A stretch of 63,470 nt of DNA, counting the filler, from Ministeria vibrans ATCC 50519 (taxonomy: Eukaryota > Protista > Filasterea), in NCBI GenBank assembly GCA_943704425.1. It is 11 parts of 11 records of this genome, joined end to end, with 100 filler letters (N's around TTAATTAATTAA, not from the genome) between each part and the next. Parts side by side here need not be neighbours in the genome. Positions count along the whole stretch, not along the records: positions 24,923 to 35,377 come from CALSCP010001638.1; 10 more parts are not named here. One strand, 5' to 3'. The notes under the pieces were generated by a model. It ran no database searches, was not told the DNA's origin, and worked only from the letters and a program-made list of their open reading frames with translations. Made by a program: the position numbers and the translations under genes. Shown piece by piece: positions 24,823 through 35,477 of the stretch (position 1 is its first letter; each line of letters starts with the position of its first letter).

Positions 24823-24985
24823 NNNNNNNNNNNNNNNNNNNNNNNNNNNNNNNNNNNNNNNNNNNNTTAATTAATTAANNNNNNNNNNNNNNNNNNNNNN
24901 NNNNNNNNNNNNNNNNNNNNNNTAATAATAATAATTATATATTTCTAATTTCAGTCTCGTTTCCTGAATAACTTTCTTTTTTGCT

Positions 24986-26194
24986 ATGGGAGCCGACGGT
25001 GGGACCATCCCGACACGGGATGAGCTTGTGAAGATGAAGGACAAAAGAAAAACGGTGAGTGAAAATAAACAATTTAAATAAGAAAAAGTTGACTGACTGA
25101 CTTGTTTTGTCTCATTGCTGATCTCTCGCTGTGTCTTTCTCCTAGATGGACAAGTCAGTTCGCAACGCGACGTTTTGGAGACACGACACGGTGACGTCGG
25201 GTCCGCTTGTAGAGCCTATTGGTGACGAAACGAGCGACACAGAAGAGACGACGTTTTCATTTTCCATTGTTAATTTTGCTCTCTCTCTCTCTCTATTTCT
25301 CTCTCTGGGTGGCCAGTTGCCTGCGAGCTGGGCCGGCTGTACAACCGAGAGACCATTCTGGAGCTGATGCTTGACCGCAGCAAGTACGGCGAGCAGGGAA
25401 ACGTCGCACAGCACATTCGTTCGATGAAGGACGTCGTTGCTTTGCGTCTGACGCCCAATCCGACGTACAGCGCAAGCAAGCAGGCGGCCGACGAGGCCAT
25501 TGCGCCCTTTGTGTGCCCCGTCTCCAACCTTGAGATGAGCGGCTTCTACCGCTTCGCCTTTCTCCCGTGTGGCTGTGTCTTCAGTGAGAAGGCACTGCGC
25601 GAAGTCACTGTGACCGCCTGTATGACGTGCGGGCGGCCGTACCAGCCCGACGACGTCACCGTCATCAACGGCTCCAAGGAGGAGCAAGAGCAGCTTCTGA
25701 ACAAACTGGTACGTGTAGCCGAGCGCACTGCTCAGAGCCACTTCGTCATTCTTCTCTTTCACCCTGTCTAGACTGCAAAACGTGCGGCAAAACAAGCGGC
25801 GAAGAAGGCGCGCAAAGCCGCCACTGCTCACTCCGCCTCCGCCACCACTACTACAACGACTTCTACCACCATTTCCACCACAGAAACAGACAAGACACGC
25901 GCAGGGCCTTCCTCAACCGCCACTCCTTCACCCAACACTTCCCAAGTCTCGAAATCCGTTCCTAAAAATCTCAAGCGCAAAAATGTCATTACCGGACCCG
26001 ACATTGCGCCCAGCGCCACCAAAATTCTTCGAACTGAACAACACTCAAGCACAAAGCAACCGTCAGTCTTACCCGCAATGGACGACGCGTCATCGAGTGT
26101 GTACAAGTCACTGTTTGAATCGGAAGCGCAGAAACGCACAAGAGAGAGTCAGAGGAGTTCTCTCTTTCAGAGAGGCGCAAATAAAATCGTATAA
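24986..26194 (+). CDS. RTF2: Replication termination factor 2, 4 exons
   Basis: MGADGGTIPTRDELVK; VACELGRLYN; FVCPVS..EMSG..RF...CGCVFSEKAL; C-terminal VYKSLF. Confidence 0.93.
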
Positions 26195-26358
26195 GAAAAA
26201 TTTTATGCGTGTGTGTGCAAAGCCCAATTCTTTAAATCTTATTAGTTTCGAGTGTAAAGCGAAGTAAAAAAAAAGAATATAATCGAGAACAGTAATAATT
26301 CTTTGTTTTATGATATACAAAAATTAATATTAATTAATATTGAAAGTATTATCAAGGG

Positions 26359-27939
26359 TCAAACTTGAGTACCAAGATGGGGCTGATCTGATGGCGATTG
26401 AGAAGCACTTTTCTGAAGGGAGTCAGAATGGGATTGAGGTGACAGCGAAATGACCCCTTTGGCAAGTTTAGAGCGTAATTCGCAAACGCGCGTAAAGTGC
26501 GGACCGAGTGAGAGTTTGTCTCGCAAAGAGACCTCAGCGGCATTTTCACTGTGATCTGTGTTGACATAGGATGGAAAGTGCGAAGAAGCTGGTTCGGACG
26601 GTGATTGAGATTGAGATGGAGTTGAGTTGAGAGAGAGAGCGGATTGGTTCCAGTTGAGGATCCACTGTTGGGCGTTTGAGAGGAGGGTAGGGTCAGCGGG
26701 AGAGTCGCAACTGGCAATAGCGTGGACTTCGTAGAGAGCGGAGCGCGCGGGAAAGCTGGAGGGAAAGTGAGCGGATTGATCGGCGATGGAACCACCCAAG
26801 TGCATAATTTCAAGAGTAGCCGTGTTTTCGGGCATGTGGTTGGCCCGGTGGGAGGCGATGAGGGAGGCGAGGGAGTCGGGGAGAGACGGGAGAAGGAGAG
26901 AGCGGGACCAGAGGTAGTGGCGCCCGGGCGAGTTGGCGGAGTCGTAGGCCGAGTAGAGATCAAGGGCGGTGATGGAGGAACGAGTGGTGAAAGAGTGGCT
27001 AGGATGGGATTCGAGGAAGGCGCAGGCGGAGACGATGGGGGCTTCGTCGTCGAAGACGTCGACGCGGGTGTTGCGGGGAGGAGACTGGACGGCGACGAGC
27101 AGCACCTTGTCGTGCAGGAAGAAGGCGAAGATGGAGAGAGAGGTGGATGCCGAGGCGCACACGCGGTTGTACATGGTGAGAAGGGAGATGCACCCGGCCG
27201 TGTCTGAGGCGGGAATGTCGAAGAAGAGCTCGGAGCGACGCAGGGCTGTCGAAGCGATGGGAGGCATGGGCAGTAAGGAGAGGCGCAGAAGACGAATCTC
27301 AAAGCGCACGACGACAACACCCAAGTTATGACCGGCGCCGCGGAGTGCACGTAGGATGCCATGGGTGTCGTTGTCGTCGGTGAGGTGGATGATTTTGTCA
27401 GAGGTGCCCAGCGCGACCCACACTGAGACGAGCTGGTCACAAGCGAGACCGAAACGCCGCGAAAGCCAGCCAATGCCGCCGCCAAGCGTCAGGCCGGCAA
27501 CACCCGTGTGCGAGACCAGGCCGGCAACGCACGCGAAGCCGTGGTCCTGCGCTGTGCGCTGTACATCGCTCCAAAGCGCACCGCCCGCCACAACGCACGT
27601 CTGTCCTTTGCGATCGACTGTAACTTCCCGCCGCAGCGACAAATCAACGCAGACGGCGCCGTCGTCGAGGCATTTCCCCGAGACGGAGTGGCCCCCGCCG
27701 CGCACCGTCACGCGCAGCTGCTCGCTGCGGCAGAATCGCAGTGTTTCCACCACTGCTTCGTCTGATCGCACCTCAACCACACAAGCCGGTCGTTTGTCCA
27801 CCGACGCGTTCCAGCACCGCCGTGCCCGATCGTACGCATCGCCATTGTCCTCCCCAATGACGTTGCCGCTGTCGCCAATCGCGCTGCGCAGTGCTTTGAG
27901 CTGAGAGGGTGTCATGAAAATATTGACATTATTCACCAT
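26359..27939 (-). CDS. Intronless FAD-linked oxidase (VAO/berberine-bridge family)
   Basis: RPACVV, VRGGGHS (covalent FAD His), TGVAGLTLGGGIGWLSRRFGLACD, ALRGAGHNLGVV, SYVN. Confidence 0.9.
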   Translation of the reverse strand: MVNNVNIFMTPSQLKALRSAIGDSGNVIGEDNGDAYDRARRCWNASVDKRPACVVEVRSDEAVVETLRFCRSEQLRVTVRGGGHSVSGKCLDDGAVCVDLSLRREVTVDRKGQTCVVAGGALWSDVQRTAQDHGFACVAGLVSHTGVAGLTLGGGIGWLSRRFGLACDQLVSVWVALGTSDKIIHLTDDNDTHGILRALRGAGHNLGVVVVRFEIRLLRLSLLPMPPIASTALRRSELFFDIPASDTAGCISLLTMYNRVCASASTSLSIFAFFLHDKVLLVAVQSPPRNTRVDVFDDEAPIVSACAFLESHPSHSFTTRSSITALDLYSAYDSANSPGRHYLWSRSLLLPSLPDSLASLIASHRANHMPENTATLEIMHLGGSIADQSAHFPSSFPARSALYEVHAIASCDSPADPTLLSNAQQWILNWNQSALSLNSTPSQSQSPSEPASSHFPSYVNTDHSENAAEVSLRDKLSLGPHFTRVCELRSKLAKGVISLSPQSHSDSLQKSASQSPSDQPHLGTQV

Positions 27940-28737
27940 TGTTTTTTAATTTTTTTGATTAAAATATGATCACACACTGATCACATAAGAGAAGATCTTT
28001 TCCCCTTCACTTAATCTTCTTGGCGGTGAGTTGGCGAATGGCGACTTGGCGCTAGACTGAGTAGCCTATGGAAGCAATAAGTATTGTATTCATTGTATTA
28101 TATATTCTTCTTCTTGAGTGAACTTCTTCATTTCTCATCCTATGTATTAATTATCATGTATTATTACGTCATCAGACTTTGTGGGACTTTTTTGTTTTCG
28201 AGAAGTGTATCCTTCCCCCCAAGGGAACAGATAGTCACAAGAAGTAAATCAAAGCCTACTCATTTGATTGAAGTCGAAGCACTTCTAAATAATAATAATA
28301 ATAAGAATAATAATTATTATTATTAATAATAATAGTTGAATATCATTCTTACAGAATAATTGATTTGGTTGACGGCATGATGCTCAAGGTTGAAACAATA
28401 CATATTGCAACGAGTTTGTGACTTTTTCTTTGTCATTTCTTAACTATTAGCTCGTGAAACGCTCAAAAATATAGTACTAATAATATTTTCGTTACAATTA
28501 TTAGTCTTTAAAATCCCAATCACAGGACATATAACAGATATAATATTACTTTACTCATACTCGATAAGTCAATCCGCCTCAATGGTTACTGCCAATGAAG
28601 CACACCATAAATATTAAAGAAAAAAATAATTATTATTAGAAGTTGACTTTTTTGGCGGTTGATTGTTGCAAGTCGAATAAGAAAACTGGATCAATCTGAC
28701 TATTCAATTATTTTTCTTACGTTTTCCGCAAAAATAC

Positions 28738-29516
28738 ATGAGAACGAAGATGAAGCGAGCAAGAATGTCACCTGTTCGTCGACCAGCTCCTGCGGAAAAG
28801 GCAAACACGGTCTCTTCAGCTGGCAAAGTGACCATTTACGCTCGCCCACAACCGACAACAACGTCTCTCGAGGAGATCATGTTCCCGTCCGACCAAGCGA
28901 CTGTGGTTCTTCAGTCTATTGATTCCAATACAATGATGGTGGGTGAACTTGTTGTGTCCTATTGTCAGAAGGACTGTTCTTTTTGGGTAATTATAACAAG
29001 GCGGAAAAATGCGGAGTTGACAAAACAATAATCCCCCCCCCCACCCCCCACCTCCCCCCGCAGGTGTCTGGAGCCTCCATTGACCATCGTGTGCCGCCGA
29101 CACAACAAAAGAAATCGTATGTCATTGTGTCAGCCTCCTCCTACGTTGGACCTAACGGAAGTGTGACGACGGAGCTTGATCTTGATGGCGAGGACAACGA
29201 TCTCCCTGAAACGCTGCGCGCTCTACAAAACCGAGTGACGGAACGCTCTGTCGGCGTTGCGACTCAACAACGTCGTCGAACTGAAGTAGGTGTTTTGCGT
29301 TGCGACTTTATCGAAAGCGTGAGTGCCTTCCTTGACGACGGCTACGAGTTGCACGGAGGATTAGTGTCAAACTTGTCTAATAGCAATCATTCAATCTACC
29401 ACCAAGCACTCACCTTCGACAGTGAAGTGCTCAGTGACGAGTGGGAGATGATCAATCGACGACTGTTTCAAGGAAATAAATCGCGAGCACCGTCGGTGAC
29501 GTCGACGAGCGCTTGA
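28738..29516 (+). CDS. Hypothetical protein, 2 exons, with C-terminal DUF1737-like segment
   Basis: Intron ~28940-29063; FIESVSAFLDDGYELHGG...YHQAL; N-terminus shared with the ORF at 38027-38229. Confidence 0.6.
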
Positions 29517-29927
29517 ATTGTTATTAATTATTCATGGATTATATTAATTTTAAGTTGAATTACTATTGTGCGTTTTTATTCATCAACAGACTAGAGTAGA
29601 TTTTTAATTGTTAATAATAGTAAAAGCATGAGACTATTGTCTATGAGCGCTACATTGTTTTGCGGTTAGTCTTTATCATTTTCTCAATTTCATTCTCTCA
29701 ATTTCATTCTCTTAATTTCATTCTCTCTTCTTCACATTAATTGGTCCACTCCGTAAATTAATTATGAATCCTTGTCTTCCATGCATTTCTCCACATAAAC
29801 CCTTTCAACCTCAGTGGGTTGAGTGCCGATTCACAATAATAATTCCAAATCTTGTTTTCATTTGTGGTTTGTTCTCGTTTCATTTATACAATAGTTAATC
29901 ATTAAAATCTCAGTGGCACTCTCTTCT

Positions 29928-30273
29928 TCATTTGGTCGACACCATAAAATCCTTCCGTCCCGTGTATTTCTCTGCAAAGGCCCGTCCGAGTGCAGTGGGT
30001 TGCGTAAATGCGACGGTTCTTCGTTCGCGCACAAAACTCCCAAACACAAAATTTTCGCGCGCACAGTCACACAATTCAGTCGCAATTCCGCTCTTCCGCG
30101 CTCCCTCGCACACCCAAATGAACTCAATGCTCAGCTGCACTTGGACATCACTCAACTTTGTGCTACACACAAAAAAGTTAATTGCAGGGTTTATCTAATA
30201 TAAAGCAAATTGGTTGCTCTAGTTCAAAACGATTTCAACATGAAATATTTTTCACCTTTGAGTTTTTTCTTCT

Positions 30274-30305
<32 letters not shown>

Positions 30306-31595
30306 TTTTTCTTCTTCTTCTTTAAACTGTGTCTCTCCCCCAAACCGATTTCCGCTCTCTCTTCGATCCACGATCGCACATCCCACAATTTGATTCGATC
30401 GAACATACAAAAATGCCTAAAAAGCACAGGGCGTGTAAACTATTCTTGTTTTTTCTATGTTTTTTATTACCTTTTGCGTCTCTGTAAATTCCATTGCAAG
30501 ATTTCCCAATGAATCAGCCATAAGCGACTGAACTTCCGTCAACTATAAAAGATGAAAAATGAAAAATTAAATTCATATTGTTTCTGTTTACGTTTTTACC
30601 TTTTGTCTCTCTTTCACTGTCATTGATTGGTCAAGCATCACAATACGATCCAACTCGGCAACCCCTTTCCCTTTCAGATTATACGATGATACAGTGCGCT
30701 TCTTCGCCCAATCACCTAAGCCAAACAGCGAAAGTAAAGCGAGTGCAAAAATAAGTTGAGTCATACGTTGAACGGGGAGTCCCAGTCGTTTTGATTCCCA
30801 CAGTCGATGGGCAGCTTTGTGTGCGTCTTCGTCCTCCTTTACATGGCGCCAGTACAGCTAGCGCAAAAAGGCAATAGTGGCGTGAGGAAGACAGATTGCG
30901 CGTGAGTGAGGGAGTGGAAAAGTGAGTGAGTGAGTGAGTGAGTAAACGAGTAAGCAAGTGTAAAAGTGAGTGAGTGAGTGGGTATGTGTGTGAGTGAGTC
31001 AATGAGGAATCAAGTGAGTGTGAGTGAGTAAAAAAAGGAAGCAAGTGAGTAAGAGAGTAAGCAAGTGAGTGAGAGAAGAGCAAGCGAGTGAGAAAGAGAG
31101 TAAACAAGCGAGTGAGTGAGTGAGTACTGTTTTGCATTCAGGACATTGAGCGCGTCCAATGTCCCTCTGACCCACATCCAAATAGGTTTGCGTGCCAGAC
31201 GACTTCTTTGGCGGCGACGACTTCTTGGCGGCACTTGCGGTCTTGGCCAGCACGCCTCGCAATGATCTGGGGGCGACGGGAACATAAGAATGAGACGGAG
31301 AGGAGAGATTCAAACTCAGTACCGAGTCAGATCGTTGTCAAACGTTTCTGTCGACTTCTTCCGCTCAAACAGCGGATGCAGCTTCAATTGCTTGCTCGGG
31401 TTCTGCGGGGACGGTGTACGTGTGTGGGATGCCGAGGACGACGACGCTCGTGCAGGCGAAGAAGGAGAGTGGGATCTGCAGTAAGACAAGTAAGAGACAT
31501 TGCTCCCGATCAATGTGTCCTCACTCGTCCTGCTCTGCGTCAACAGCGTCGCGCTTCCTCTTCCAAGACATTGGTGGGTCCTCTATCCTCAGCAT
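29928..31595 (-). CDS. ECO1: Cohesin acetyltransferase Eco1/ESCO, ~8 exons
   Basis: QTYLDVGQ...CPEC|LY......DEDAH...H zinc finger; IVGCAIV; IWV...RKSGIATEL.D..RENFVFG...AFTQPT..G..FA..Y. Confidence 0.88.
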
Positions 31596-32009
31596 GGGGC
31601 GAAATCAGACAAAAAAGAAGTGACTCTAGTCTATACTGAATTGAACTTTGGAGAATGATCACAGATTGGAAAGTTGCGCGCCAAAAATTCAAAAAATATT
31701 ATTATTATTGTTATTATTATTATAATCGGCGGAAGTATTGTGCTACTCTTTTGTCTTGTATATTATCTTGTTTATGAATTATGAGTTGTTTTGACATCGA
31801 GAACAGCTCTCTATACTCGATATTTTTTCAGCTGATTCTTTGTTTTTCACAACAAAAAATTGTTATAACTGTGCACTTTCGAAAAGAAAGAAGTCAAAGA
31901 TTAGAAAAACAAACTTTGCTGTCGCAGAGACATATAAGAAATCGATCGATAACATAATTATTGTACTGCTTTGATCTGTCTCTCTCGGCTCTTTTTCTTT
32001 CGGCTCTTT

Positions 32010-35000
32010 TCACTTCCCATCCCTGAACAGCAGAATGTCTCCGTCGTTGCGTGTGCCCAGCCACTCATCCCACATGCGCCCCACCACCATTGCCTGGTAC
32101 GTGTTCGCCGTGTCCATCTCCCGCAGTCTCTGCCGCAGTCCCACCGCAGTAATGTGCTCTTCTCCGTCGCGAAACGCCTCCAGTGTTGCGGGTTCCAGTG
32201 CGCGCAGTAGCAACTCAGTCAGACGAGTGTACTTGGAGACCATCACCACCTTTCCATCAGGTTTAGTCCATGGCACTTGCTCGTGCGACATGTAACTGCT
32301 CGTGTCCCCCAGTGAGCTGGCGAGAAGCTGGCGTGAGTACCCGTGCTGAGCGACTGGGCTCCCAAATGCCAGGTCATGCTCCGGCTTGAGCAGTGCGCCC
32401 GACCAGCAGAAATCGCACACAACCAGAATGTTGCACCCGGGCCACTGCACAGTGGCTGTCAACAAACCCTTCAAAGCATCGAGATTGAATCGCGAAAACG
32501 GACTGAAAATGTTCGGGGCAAACTCAGTCCGCTCGGCATCACTGAGCAGCAAACCGCCCTGACTGTCCTCCGCTCCGTGGCCCAGTAAGTGCACAATAAG
32601 CAGCGCGTCTCGTCCCACTCCTTCCCCCACATCTCTCACCAATCGACGTGTCGCTGCCCCAATCTCAAATGCAGTTACTTGGTCTCCTGCGCTCGTGTCC
32701 GTCACACTCTGCACGCTGAAGCCGCGTCCCTTCCACAGACTCTCCAGCGCACTTACACTCCGACGCACTCCAGGCAAGTCAGGAAAAGCCGCCAAATGAG
32801 CATTCGTCGTCGACTCGTAGCAACTCACGCCCACAATCAATGCCGCCGCGTGGACGTACCGACGTGACATTGTGAGACCTGGGCAAAATCCATGAGTTAT
32901 TGACAATAATGAGAGTCTAAAAGAAAATTGATTTTTTTTTTGTCTTTTCCTCGCTACTTACCGGCTCTTTTGGTCCACCACTCTTCGAGTTTCTCGTTGC
33001 ACACCCGCGGTTCCTTGCTGTGCAGCACCGCAGCCAGCGTACCTTCTTCTCGGTACACCTCGGGTGACGCAGCCACATCCAAAGGTCGGAACAGAGGCAG
33101 TGATGGTTTCATTGGACTCGCGGGCACAAGCACAGAAGCACCACGCCATCCCCACCGCAGACTCCGCGTCTGGTCACACACTCCCGTGCTCACCCGATGC
33201 AACGTCGCCACTACTCGCTCAGGTGGTCCCCCATCGTCAAACACCTCCACACGGATGAAATCCTCACCCACATTCAGACGCAGTCGCACAGGAGCACAAC
33301 CGCCCATCACAAGCTTATCTGTGCATCGCTGAGTCGCTCGGATCGCACACACTTTCATCGTCTCGCGCCACAGCGCCACCACAACCAGATGGAAGGTCGC
33401 CAGTGACACGGGAAGCACGGAGCGCGTGTCCTCTTCGTCTTTCACCACCTGGTACAGCATCACCTGTACTGGTGCGGTTGTCGCTTTCTCAACAAACGGT
33501 GCATGATCCGGCAGAAGCATCGGCACGAGCAAACGAGTGTTGTGTTGGAACACAAGACTCAGTCGCTCAAGTGCCGAAAAAAGCGACGGCCCGTCTGGGA
33601 CGTCCGCACCAGCCAGGAGCGGCTCGCCCTTCGCCTCACGCGCCGCCGCAGTCCACACGAGCCACAGCGCAACGTCAACAGGGAATCCCTCTTCCGAGAA
33701 ATGGCGTGCCTCGTCCAGCTCGGCAAACAGCTTCAACGTCTTTTTGTTGTCCAGTCGCCGTCCTGCCGCCTTCACCAGATCAAGCATGTCAAGTGCGCGA
33801 TCACTCGTCGCCCGCTTCCACTGTGCCATCACCACCGAGCACAGCAACTCAACAGCTGCAATCAGACGCGGCACATCAAACACAATCGTGTCCGAAGCAC
33901 TCACGCCTCGCGCACTCGAGTTCTCACGACACACCAACACATCCGCAGCCTCCTCAAGATATGGCACCAGTCCTGTACGGAGTGCGTGCTCGTCGGGAAC
34001 CAGCGACCCGACTGTGATGACCGGTGTGGTCTCACTCAAAACGATTCTCGGCAGATCAGCGACAGACGACAGCAGCTCAATGCGGCCCTTCCGCGACCAT
34101 CGACCAACCAGATCCTGTGCACACACATACTCCAGTGGCAATCGCCGACCACGCACTGCAGCACGCATCCCCTTGCTGAGGTCGCGCAGGCCAATGCCCT
34201 TTGCGCTGCCCACTTGAAAGAACGGAGTGCGACCAGACCCAGGCAGAATCAGGTGATTGCCCAACACCGGTCCCACAACGCGATCAATCTCATCAGAGAC
34301 AGTGCGCAGCAGCGAGGACGGCGCGGTGTCGTCGGGGAGCGTGTCGAGGTGGGTGCCCACAATAAGCACACGGAAGTACGACGAGAGCGTCTCCGGCACT
34401 TGGTGCGCAATCAGGTGAGCCCACTTGGACAGGTGCTCGTACTGTCGCCGTGCTTGTGTGGCGTCGTTCATGACGGACAGGTCAAAGACGAGGATGTAGG
34501 CCGACTCGGATCCCATAAAAAGCGCAGGCAGCGAGTCAAACATTGCTTCACCTGATGTAATAAAAAAGAAATCAGTGTCTATCCGAGGCACAGTGAAACT
34601 GTCAATTCTTTCTCACCGGCAAAGTCGAAAGTGTCAAGATCAATGTGCTGCTCACTCAGTTCGCCCTTGAGCAGGTCTTGGACCGCACTCATCGTGAGGG
34701 CACTGGCACTGGCAGTAGTCGCAATGGGAGTGGCAGGTGATGGTGTCATGGGCGTCGTGGTTGATGATGATGTTGTTGGCACAGGGTGAGCTGAAGCAAT
34801 CACTGCCGAGGGCCCACTCGACATACTCCCTGTAGTTTCACTCTCTCCGTCTCCGTCTCCTCCTCCTCCTCCTCCTCCTCCGTCCTCCTCCACCAACACC
34901 ACCTTCTTCTCTCCAATCATGCTCTTCAAACGGTACTCCTCCACCGGCACTGCCTCAAAGAAGCCCCCCTCCTTGTTGAACACCAGTCGCATGCGCTGAA

Positions 35001-35310
35001 ATCGTGTGGCAATCGACCGGGCTTCCTTCCCGGGCAATGAGTGTCCCTGCAGTGCCGCAAGCAGCGCCGTCTTGCCCGCCATCGTTGCACCCATAAACAA
35101 CACCTTCATCGACAGTGACTCAACCGACCCGCGACCCAGCGCCGACTTGAAGGCTGATCGGTGGAATGTGTTCCTGCAAGAAACACAAAAAGAGTGTGAT
35201 GTGACTGTGTTTGGGAGTGAGTGTGTGTGTCTCTTACGGATCGTGCAGTTCGAGCGTGTCAGTGACGGACCAATCAAATGTATCTGGCTCACAGTGAATG
35301 TGGAGTGTCT
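32010..35310 (-). CDS. Roco protein: Roc GTPase + COR + C-terminal caspase-family (C14) protease, 5'-partial
   Basis: G1 GATMAGKT, G3 DFAG|E, G4 VGTHLD; COR ...LLVPMLLP; in-frame phase-1 intron 32961-32879 joins to ALIVG...HLLGHG...DFCWSG. Confidence 0.82.
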
Positions 35311-35477
35311 GTCCGTCCAAAGAAAACTCAATCGATTTGGGAGCACTGAGAACAAAAGCGAAAATGAGTCAAACAAGNNNNNNNNNNNNNNNNNNNNNNN
35401 NNNNNNNNNNNNNNNNNNNNNTTAATTAATTAANNNNNNNNNNNNNNNNNNNNNNNNNNNNNNNNNNNNNNNNNNNN

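Follow-up and report, generated by a model that had tools for sequence, protein, structure and literature searches.

The DNA stretch considered here (hereafter the window; 63,470 nucleotides (nt), filler included) joins 11 parts of the Ministeria vibrans ATCC 50519 genome, and the piece analysed, window positions 24923-35377, comes from record CALSCP010001638.1. It carries one spliced nuclear gene whose protein follows the order WD40 propeller, Roc GTPase, COR-A/COR-B and caspase-like cysteine protease. On the minus strand, to which all parts of the gene belong, one finds exon 0, a degenerate last WD40-like blade (35238-35345; 108 nt, in phase 2 at either end); exon 1 (34617-35173), which encodes the N-terminal half of Roc, assigned from the sequence and from paralog alignment A3; exon 2, of which the first part (34139-34551) is the C-terminal half of Roc, with switch II, G4, G5 and the LRRK2 Roc matches, and the remainder (32962-34138) is given to COR by predicted fold; and exon 3, a caspase-like Peptidase_C14 domain of clan CD (32010-32878; Pfam PF00656), which ends with the stop codon TGA at 32010-32012. 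The full protein is roughly 1,300-1,400 residues long, with at least 1,040 encoded within the piece. The three open reading frames (ORFs) on which a preliminary description of the locus was built (34579-35376, 32954-34591 and 32010-32906) are present as it gave them, as are the motifs GATMAGKT, DFAG, THLD, LLGHG, DFCWSG and PGVRRSV.

The exon structure was established by aligning contigs from four public runs (X1, X5, X9 and X16) to positions 32010-35377, the first three runs representing three studies. Both introns proposed in the preliminary description, canonical, in phase 1 and with GT..AG ends seen in the sequence, are removed exactly in contigs of X1, X5 and X9, with 61-220 matching nt on the shorter side of the joints. 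The first (34552-34616; 65 nt, shorter side 105-220 nt) interrupts the Gly codon within the G3 motif DFAG, and its removal places G 34617 beside GT 34551-34550 to read DFA-G-EAMF. The second (32879-32961; 83 nt, GTAAG..CAG, 61-80 nt on the shorter side) lies between COR and the protease, and its removal places G 32962 beside GT 32878-32877 to read KRA-G-LTMSRR. ORF 34579-35376 had been taken for a single exon, which has to be corrected, as contigs of X1 (three contigs), X5 and X9 remove a further intron (35174-35237; 64 nt, GT..AG, phase 2) and carry the joint 35173/35238. Contigs of the same three runs stop matching at 35345, beside the acceptor AG 35347-35346, and then run into other sequence, so that at least one further exon lies upstream, off the piece. 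X16, a polyA marine metatranscriptome, provides two contigs that lie between 33099 and 33503 and are 95-99% alike. The splicing is thus precise and observed in the contigs, and is not a chance pattern. A second joint, present in X1 and X9 at 32879-32969, removes 89 nt and has six other letters (GAGTCG) inserted; most likely it stems from the exon 2/exon 3 junction of a paralog and not from alternative splicing.

Prokaryote-style gene callers return three ORFs at this locus, and a stop codon follows each exon, which would suit two separate neighbouring genes, one for a GTPase and one for a caspase, or else an assembly artefact. Yet spliced contigs from three studies bridge every junction, so that the three ORFs form one gene; they include the exon 2/exon 3 joint, where the preliminary description had proposed a transcript check, and argue there against separate GTPase and protease transcripts. 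The domain order also recurs on seven independent scaffolds, and a further scaffold, L008, reproduces window positions 31929-33029 at 99.7% identity. Separate GTPase and caspase genes are rejected as contradicted by the spliced contigs, and this account as a whole, artefact included, is extremely improbable.

Searches were performed exon by exon, and Roc, split by intron 34552-34616, was always searched as halves, so that its profile scores are lower bounds. All the motifs G1 to G5 of a Roc domain are present and conserved in the paralogs. Exon 1 contributes strand 1, the P-loop GATMAGKT (35068-35091), the switch-I Thr and the D-F-A of G3 (34618-34626), and the P-loop, switch-I Thr and DFA are invariant in alignment A3. 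From exon 2 come the remainder of G3, switch II, the G4 motif THLD (34343-34354, within VGTHLD) and the G5 motif SAK (34199-34207, within GSAK); Roc domains have THxD in place of the NKxD motif. The Pfam matches of exon 1, to Roc, Arf and EutP, are all weak, and its best PDB sequence matches are small-GTPase P-loops, that of the C. tepidum Roco among them. When the exon-2 family profile was compared with all PDB sequences, seven weak matches were obtained, six of them to LRRK2 Roc (best E 0.11), and the LRRK2 matches are in register from FM..Y..DLS through VGTHLD. In the structural alignment, LRRK2 residue 1397 falls on residue 1 of the exon-2 model, a register that fits a Roc domain cut just past G3. 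The Roc-type GTPase of the preliminary description is therefore supported by its motifs and by weak sequence matches and structural matches that are both in register with LRRK2 Roc. Between strands 2 and 3 of Roc, some 60-90 low-complexity Gly/Ser/Thr/Pro residues are inserted (~34678-34911); the length and sequence of this insert differ among the paralogs of alignment A3, and transcripts show 3-nt indels in it at 34737 and 34762.

A complete COR-A/COR-B fold (COR-A ~33512-34138, COR-B ~32963-33481) is predicted directly after Roc. The AlphaFold2 model of exon 2, built from 12 family sequences, reaches predicted local distance difference test (pLDDT) values of 70-97 over residues 140-510. The best 19 listed matches of a Foldseek search against the PDB are all Roco structures (LRRK1, LRRK2 and the C. 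tepidum Roco), including the COR-only chain 3dpt_B. VIA-align, run against 48,161 chains, also places 3dpt_B, the Chlorobium Roco COR, on top (Z 13.1; 277 of 299 residues, model residues 138-529), followed by 3dpu_B (Z 12.4), other Rocos near Z 8 and a first unrelated fold at Z 6.8. In the ESM Atlas, the nearest clusters of exon 2 are all COR-A, Roc or COR-B (score 0.97). Because three methods agree, Roc-COR is taken as established; the full COR claimed earlier stands by predicted fold, though not by Pfam profile.

Exon 3 passes the Pfam Peptidase_C14 profile PF00656 (25.6 bits against a cut-off of 21.4, E 1.2e-5), with a weak CHAT match besides, and it matches the NCBIfam entry caspase_w_EACC1 (EACC1-associated caspase) with E 6.6e-8; Peptidase_C14 is also a precomputed annotation of paralogs P0013, P0014, P0016 and P0018. 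The catalytic His lies in LLGHG (32577-32579, His100) and the catalytic Cys in DFCWSG (32406-32408, Cys157), and a profile alignment places them on the H and C of metacaspase 4. A model made from nine paralogs (pLDDT 73.6) retrieves with Foldseek MALT1, caspases 4, 6 and 7, metacaspase 9 and the bacterial homologue GSU0716. With VIA-align, Z values fall between 13 and 14.7 (14.7 for metacaspase 4, 14.4 for MALT1, 13.9 for caspase-9 and 13.7 for GSU0716) and, being tied across caspase subfamilies, do not resolve the subfamily. The C14 protease of the preliminary description thus holds by a Pfam score above cut-off, a caspase fold and a conserved His/Cys pair. Its "bacterial-type" character is weakly supported: the nearest language-model clusters are all Peptidase_C14, bacterial ones first, and the NCBIfam match points weakly the same way, but sequence comparison gives no bacterial relative.

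In the profile alignment to Arabidopsis metacaspase 4, Ser stands opposite the Asp of C-V-N-D in all paralogs covering the site, in agreement with the earlier observation that the first metacaspase S1 Asp is absent. The protein is therefore not to be classed as a canonical metacaspase, and type I/II membership was rejected on this replacement of the Asp of C-x-N-D after strand 1. The missing S1 Asp, together with the presence of c-FLIP and Raptor among the VIA-align structural matches, might also suggest an inactive scaffold of the c-FLIP or Raptor type, the protein then being only a WD40-Roc-COR adaptor. This is very unlikely, as His100 and Cys157 with their neighbouring glycines, and also the Asp two residues ahead of the Cys, are invariant in nine paralogs that range from 48% to 100% identity.

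Seven related scaffolds were found (L001-L007), six of them from one sample that also holds the window gene itself (L008), and this sample contains at least seven distinct paralogs; identity within the family is 51-95%. When the exon peptides were searched by tblastn, the order last blade, Roc half, Roc-COR, caspase was recovered on every scaffold that reaches far enough. With exon 2, HMMER against 1.84 billion representatives returned five matches, each of them either a family member or spurious; word-indexed and profile searches yielded paralogs only and no relative outside the lineage, and a pattern scan of JGI metagenome contigs found no relative. Nor did the caspase alignment, used as a pattern against bacterial and archaeal genomes, find one. 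Judged by these comparisons, the family is multi-copy and lineage-restricted.

Two scaffolds depart from the common organisation at their 3′ side. L004:296-2706 matches window 35377-32957 with 94.6% DNA identity, from the end of the piece to 5 nt past the intron-2 donor, and diverges beyond that point: its intron is unalignable and its caspase exon (L004:2787-3593) has 55% protein identity, as distant as other paralogs. Two kinds of cause can be considered for this break: an exchange of the effector exon or gene conversion among paralogs on the one hand, and a chimeric metagenome scaffold on the other. L005:2794-3212, 74% identical in exon 2, retains the WW..G|GTAAG donor; the remaining 400 nt contain no caspase exon, and a gene is called on the opposite strand in the stretch after exon 2, so the C-terminus of this paralog may be truncated or different.

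The preliminary description held that an N-terminal sensor was cut off by the contig end, and indeed transcripts run off the piece; the missing N-terminus is predicted, by comparison with the paralogs, to be a WD40 propeller of seven to eight blades encoded upstream. In L001, seven pieces ahead of the Roc exon score above the Pfam WD40 cut-off, as do further pieces in L003. Exon 0, which has no Pfam match on its own, is the homologue of the final blade ahead of Roc in L001 and L004. The WD40 exon stretches (L001:684-1723, L002:1398-1890, L003:1402-2246 and L004:148-270) appear to encode each repeat in an exon of its own; these exons mostly measure 126 nt and all begin and end in phase 2. This layout is predicted from GT/AG ends and reading frame and confirmed by transcripts only at exon 0 and at the junction at 35345. 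With such equal-phase exons, repeats can be gained, lost or shuffled without frame shift, like the LRR (leucine-rich repeat) exons of brown-algal ROCO genes.

Elsewhere on the piece lie an FAD_binding_4 oxidoreductase gene on the minus strand (26362-27939; E 8.7e-27) and, on the plus strand, a fragment of an Rtf2 RING-finger gene (25367-25768; E 8e-36); by their sequence matches both fit a eukaryotic nuclear genome. An Rfam scan of the piece gave no match. In the intergenic stretches at ~30210-30512 and 30712-31137, a long tract of T and a series of TCAC/TCACTCAC-like repeats show up as poly-Phe and THSL-repeat pseudo-ORFs.

The novelty claimed in the preliminary description was overstated, since bacterial Roc-COR-caspase proteins and SAR (stramenopile, alveolate and rhizarian) Rocos with a C-terminal peptidase had already been described. 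Bacterial LRR-AP-GTPase(Roc)-COR proteins, found by computation and read as counter-invader systems, have at their C-terminus one or another of at least 24 domains, including caspase, TIR and trypsin (Kaur et al. 2021, PMC8195603). They share with the Ministeria gene the order of repeat sensor, Roc, COR and C-terminal effector and the presence of several paralogs per genome. Their sensor is LRR and their hosts are prokaryotic, whereas the Ministeria gene is eukaryotic, has a WD40 sensor and spliceosomal introns and lies among eukaryotic genes such as Rtf2, which places it outside that bacterial group; moreover, the bacterial effectors vary, while all paralogs found in the Ministeria family carry one effector kind.

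Brown algae (Ectocarpus) possess expanded LRR-ROC-COR candidate immune receptors with shuffled repeat exons (PMC3341825), and a small brown-algal ROCO "group 3", shared with other SAR organisms, has the C-terminal peptidase IPR009003 (PMC11378527). These proteins resemble the Ministeria family in being multi-copy, in having been proposed as immune receptors, in bearing C-terminal peptidases in some cases and in an often undetectable Pfam COR. In both groups the sensor repeats lie in exons of equal length and in multiples of three, which suits exon shuffling. The brown-algal and SAR sensor is LRR rather than WD40, IPR009003 is presumably the serine-protease PA clan and not a C14 caspase, and sequence searches detected no relationship between the two groups.

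Among eukaryotic proteins, LRRK2 and LRRK1 provide the best Roc and COR matches in sequence and structure, with THLD and FM..Y..DLS in common, and also have WD40 repeats; in LRRK2 and LRRK1, however, a kinase follows COR and WD40 is C-terminal, whereas in the Ministeria protein WD40 is N-terminal and a protease occupies the kinase position. DAPK1 and those Roc-COR proteins of invertebrates or placozoans that have a Death, CARD or TIR domain likewise tie the switch to cell-death machinery, but they recruit effectors via adaptor domains, while the Ministeria protein has its protease fused directly to the switch. Roc-COR-Death clusters are among the nearest language-model neighbours of exon 2, and the Rocos of Trichoplax carry CARD, death and TIR domains. 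The Apaf-1 apoptosome and the bacterial and fungal caspase-STAND-WD40 systems follow a common logic of WD40 sensor, NTPase switch and caspase-family protease. Those systems use a ring-forming AAA+ ATPase with the effector or CARD at the N-terminus, in contrast to the Ras-like GTPase with COR and C-terminal protease of Ministeria, and the exon searches gave no profile or fold match to a STAND (NB-ARC/NACHT) core.

The general design was thus already known from its bacterial, brown-algal/SAR and Trichoplax precedents. The 2019 Roco review names no protease (PMC6337361), and a literature search, of incomplete coverage, found no described eukaryotic Roc-COR-C14 protein. The new elements are the use of WD40 as the sensor, the occurrence of a C14 effector in a eukaryote and a sequence family confined to one lineage.

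It appears fairly probable that the protein is a ligand-gated, GTPase-controlled, one-chain sensor-switch-protease for cell death or defence. Initiator caspases and MALT1 are activated by proximity. In Roco proteins, repeats N-terminal to Roc-COR are interaction modules and COR is a dimerisation device (PMC6337361). The WD40 propeller would bind a trigger, a foreign or damage-related molecule, and this binding would alter the nucleotide state and the COR-mediated self-association of Roc-COR. The C-terminal proteases would then be brought together or released and would cut host or invader proteins, the outcome being cell death or defence. The whole would form a one-chain counterpart of the apoptosome, based on a GTPase instead of a STAND ATPase. 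A role in conflict is favoured over housekeeping signalling because of the paralogs, the strictly conserved catalytic residues and the one-repeat-per-exon build, and the multi-copy family may be seen as the pattern usual for immune-type receptors.

The main rival is a MALT1-like signalling role. With the same architecture, the protease would be a non-lethal signalling enzyme like this paracaspase, performing limited proteolysis, under GTPase control and on few substrates, that regulates trafficking, the cytoskeleton or transcription. MALT1 is one of the closest structural matches of the protease, and eukaryotic Rocos such as LRRK2 work in signalling and trafficking (PMC6337361). On the other side, at least seven fast-diverging paralogs with mosaic effector exons are more typical of conflict genes, and the bacterial Roc-COR-caspase proteins have been interpreted as conflict systems; the signalling account is accordingly possible but rather unlikely.

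Several points weigh against a sensor-switch-protease for death or defence. Nothing in the analysis links the gene to death or infection, which also favours the signalling role. Metacaspases require no dimerisation, so that activation by proximity is an assumption, and the Ser that the alignment shows in place of the first S1 Asp may affect the substrate preference. The WD40 link of the window gene itself consists of the paralogs and of the 30 nt by which its transcripts extend past 35345; these 30 nt recur unchanged in L004 (241-270), where they close a WD40 exon at its 3′ side. The RNA label of the runs is a guess, although the exact removal of three GT..AG introns argues for complementary DNA. 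Pfam Roc (PF08477) reaches 12.9 bits against a cut-off of 27, this for exon 1 alone and for an intron-split domain with a long insert, and the Roc half in exon 2, a cut half-domain, is modelled poorly (AlphaFold2 pLDDT <50). Lastly, exon 2 has no Pfam match, COR included, and no NCBIfam match; Pfam COR was detected in only 18 of 111 brown-algal Rocos (PMC11378527).

A bolder version of the sensor-switch-protease would see, in this marine protist, a family of germline-diversified one-chain "GTPase apoptosomes", in which per-repeat WD40 exons and swappable caspase exons diversify receptors against viruses; we regard it as doubtful. As the protease lacks the metacaspase S1 Asp, its P1 preference might differ from that of metacaspases. 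If true, this could explain part of the unexplained "caspase-like" activities reported in plankton cell death.

For the Roco field, a protease fused to Roc-COR would offer a simple enzymatic read-out of a switch whose mechanism LRRK2 researchers still debate. As regards how cell death and immunity evolved, the gene shows that a eukaryote uses a layout predicted for bacterial conflict systems, with a WD40 sensor and a family as expanded and mosaic as those of immune receptors. Since Pfam Roc and COR barely detect this family, Roco counts based on Pfam would miss it, and the diversity of Rocos in protists may be underestimated.

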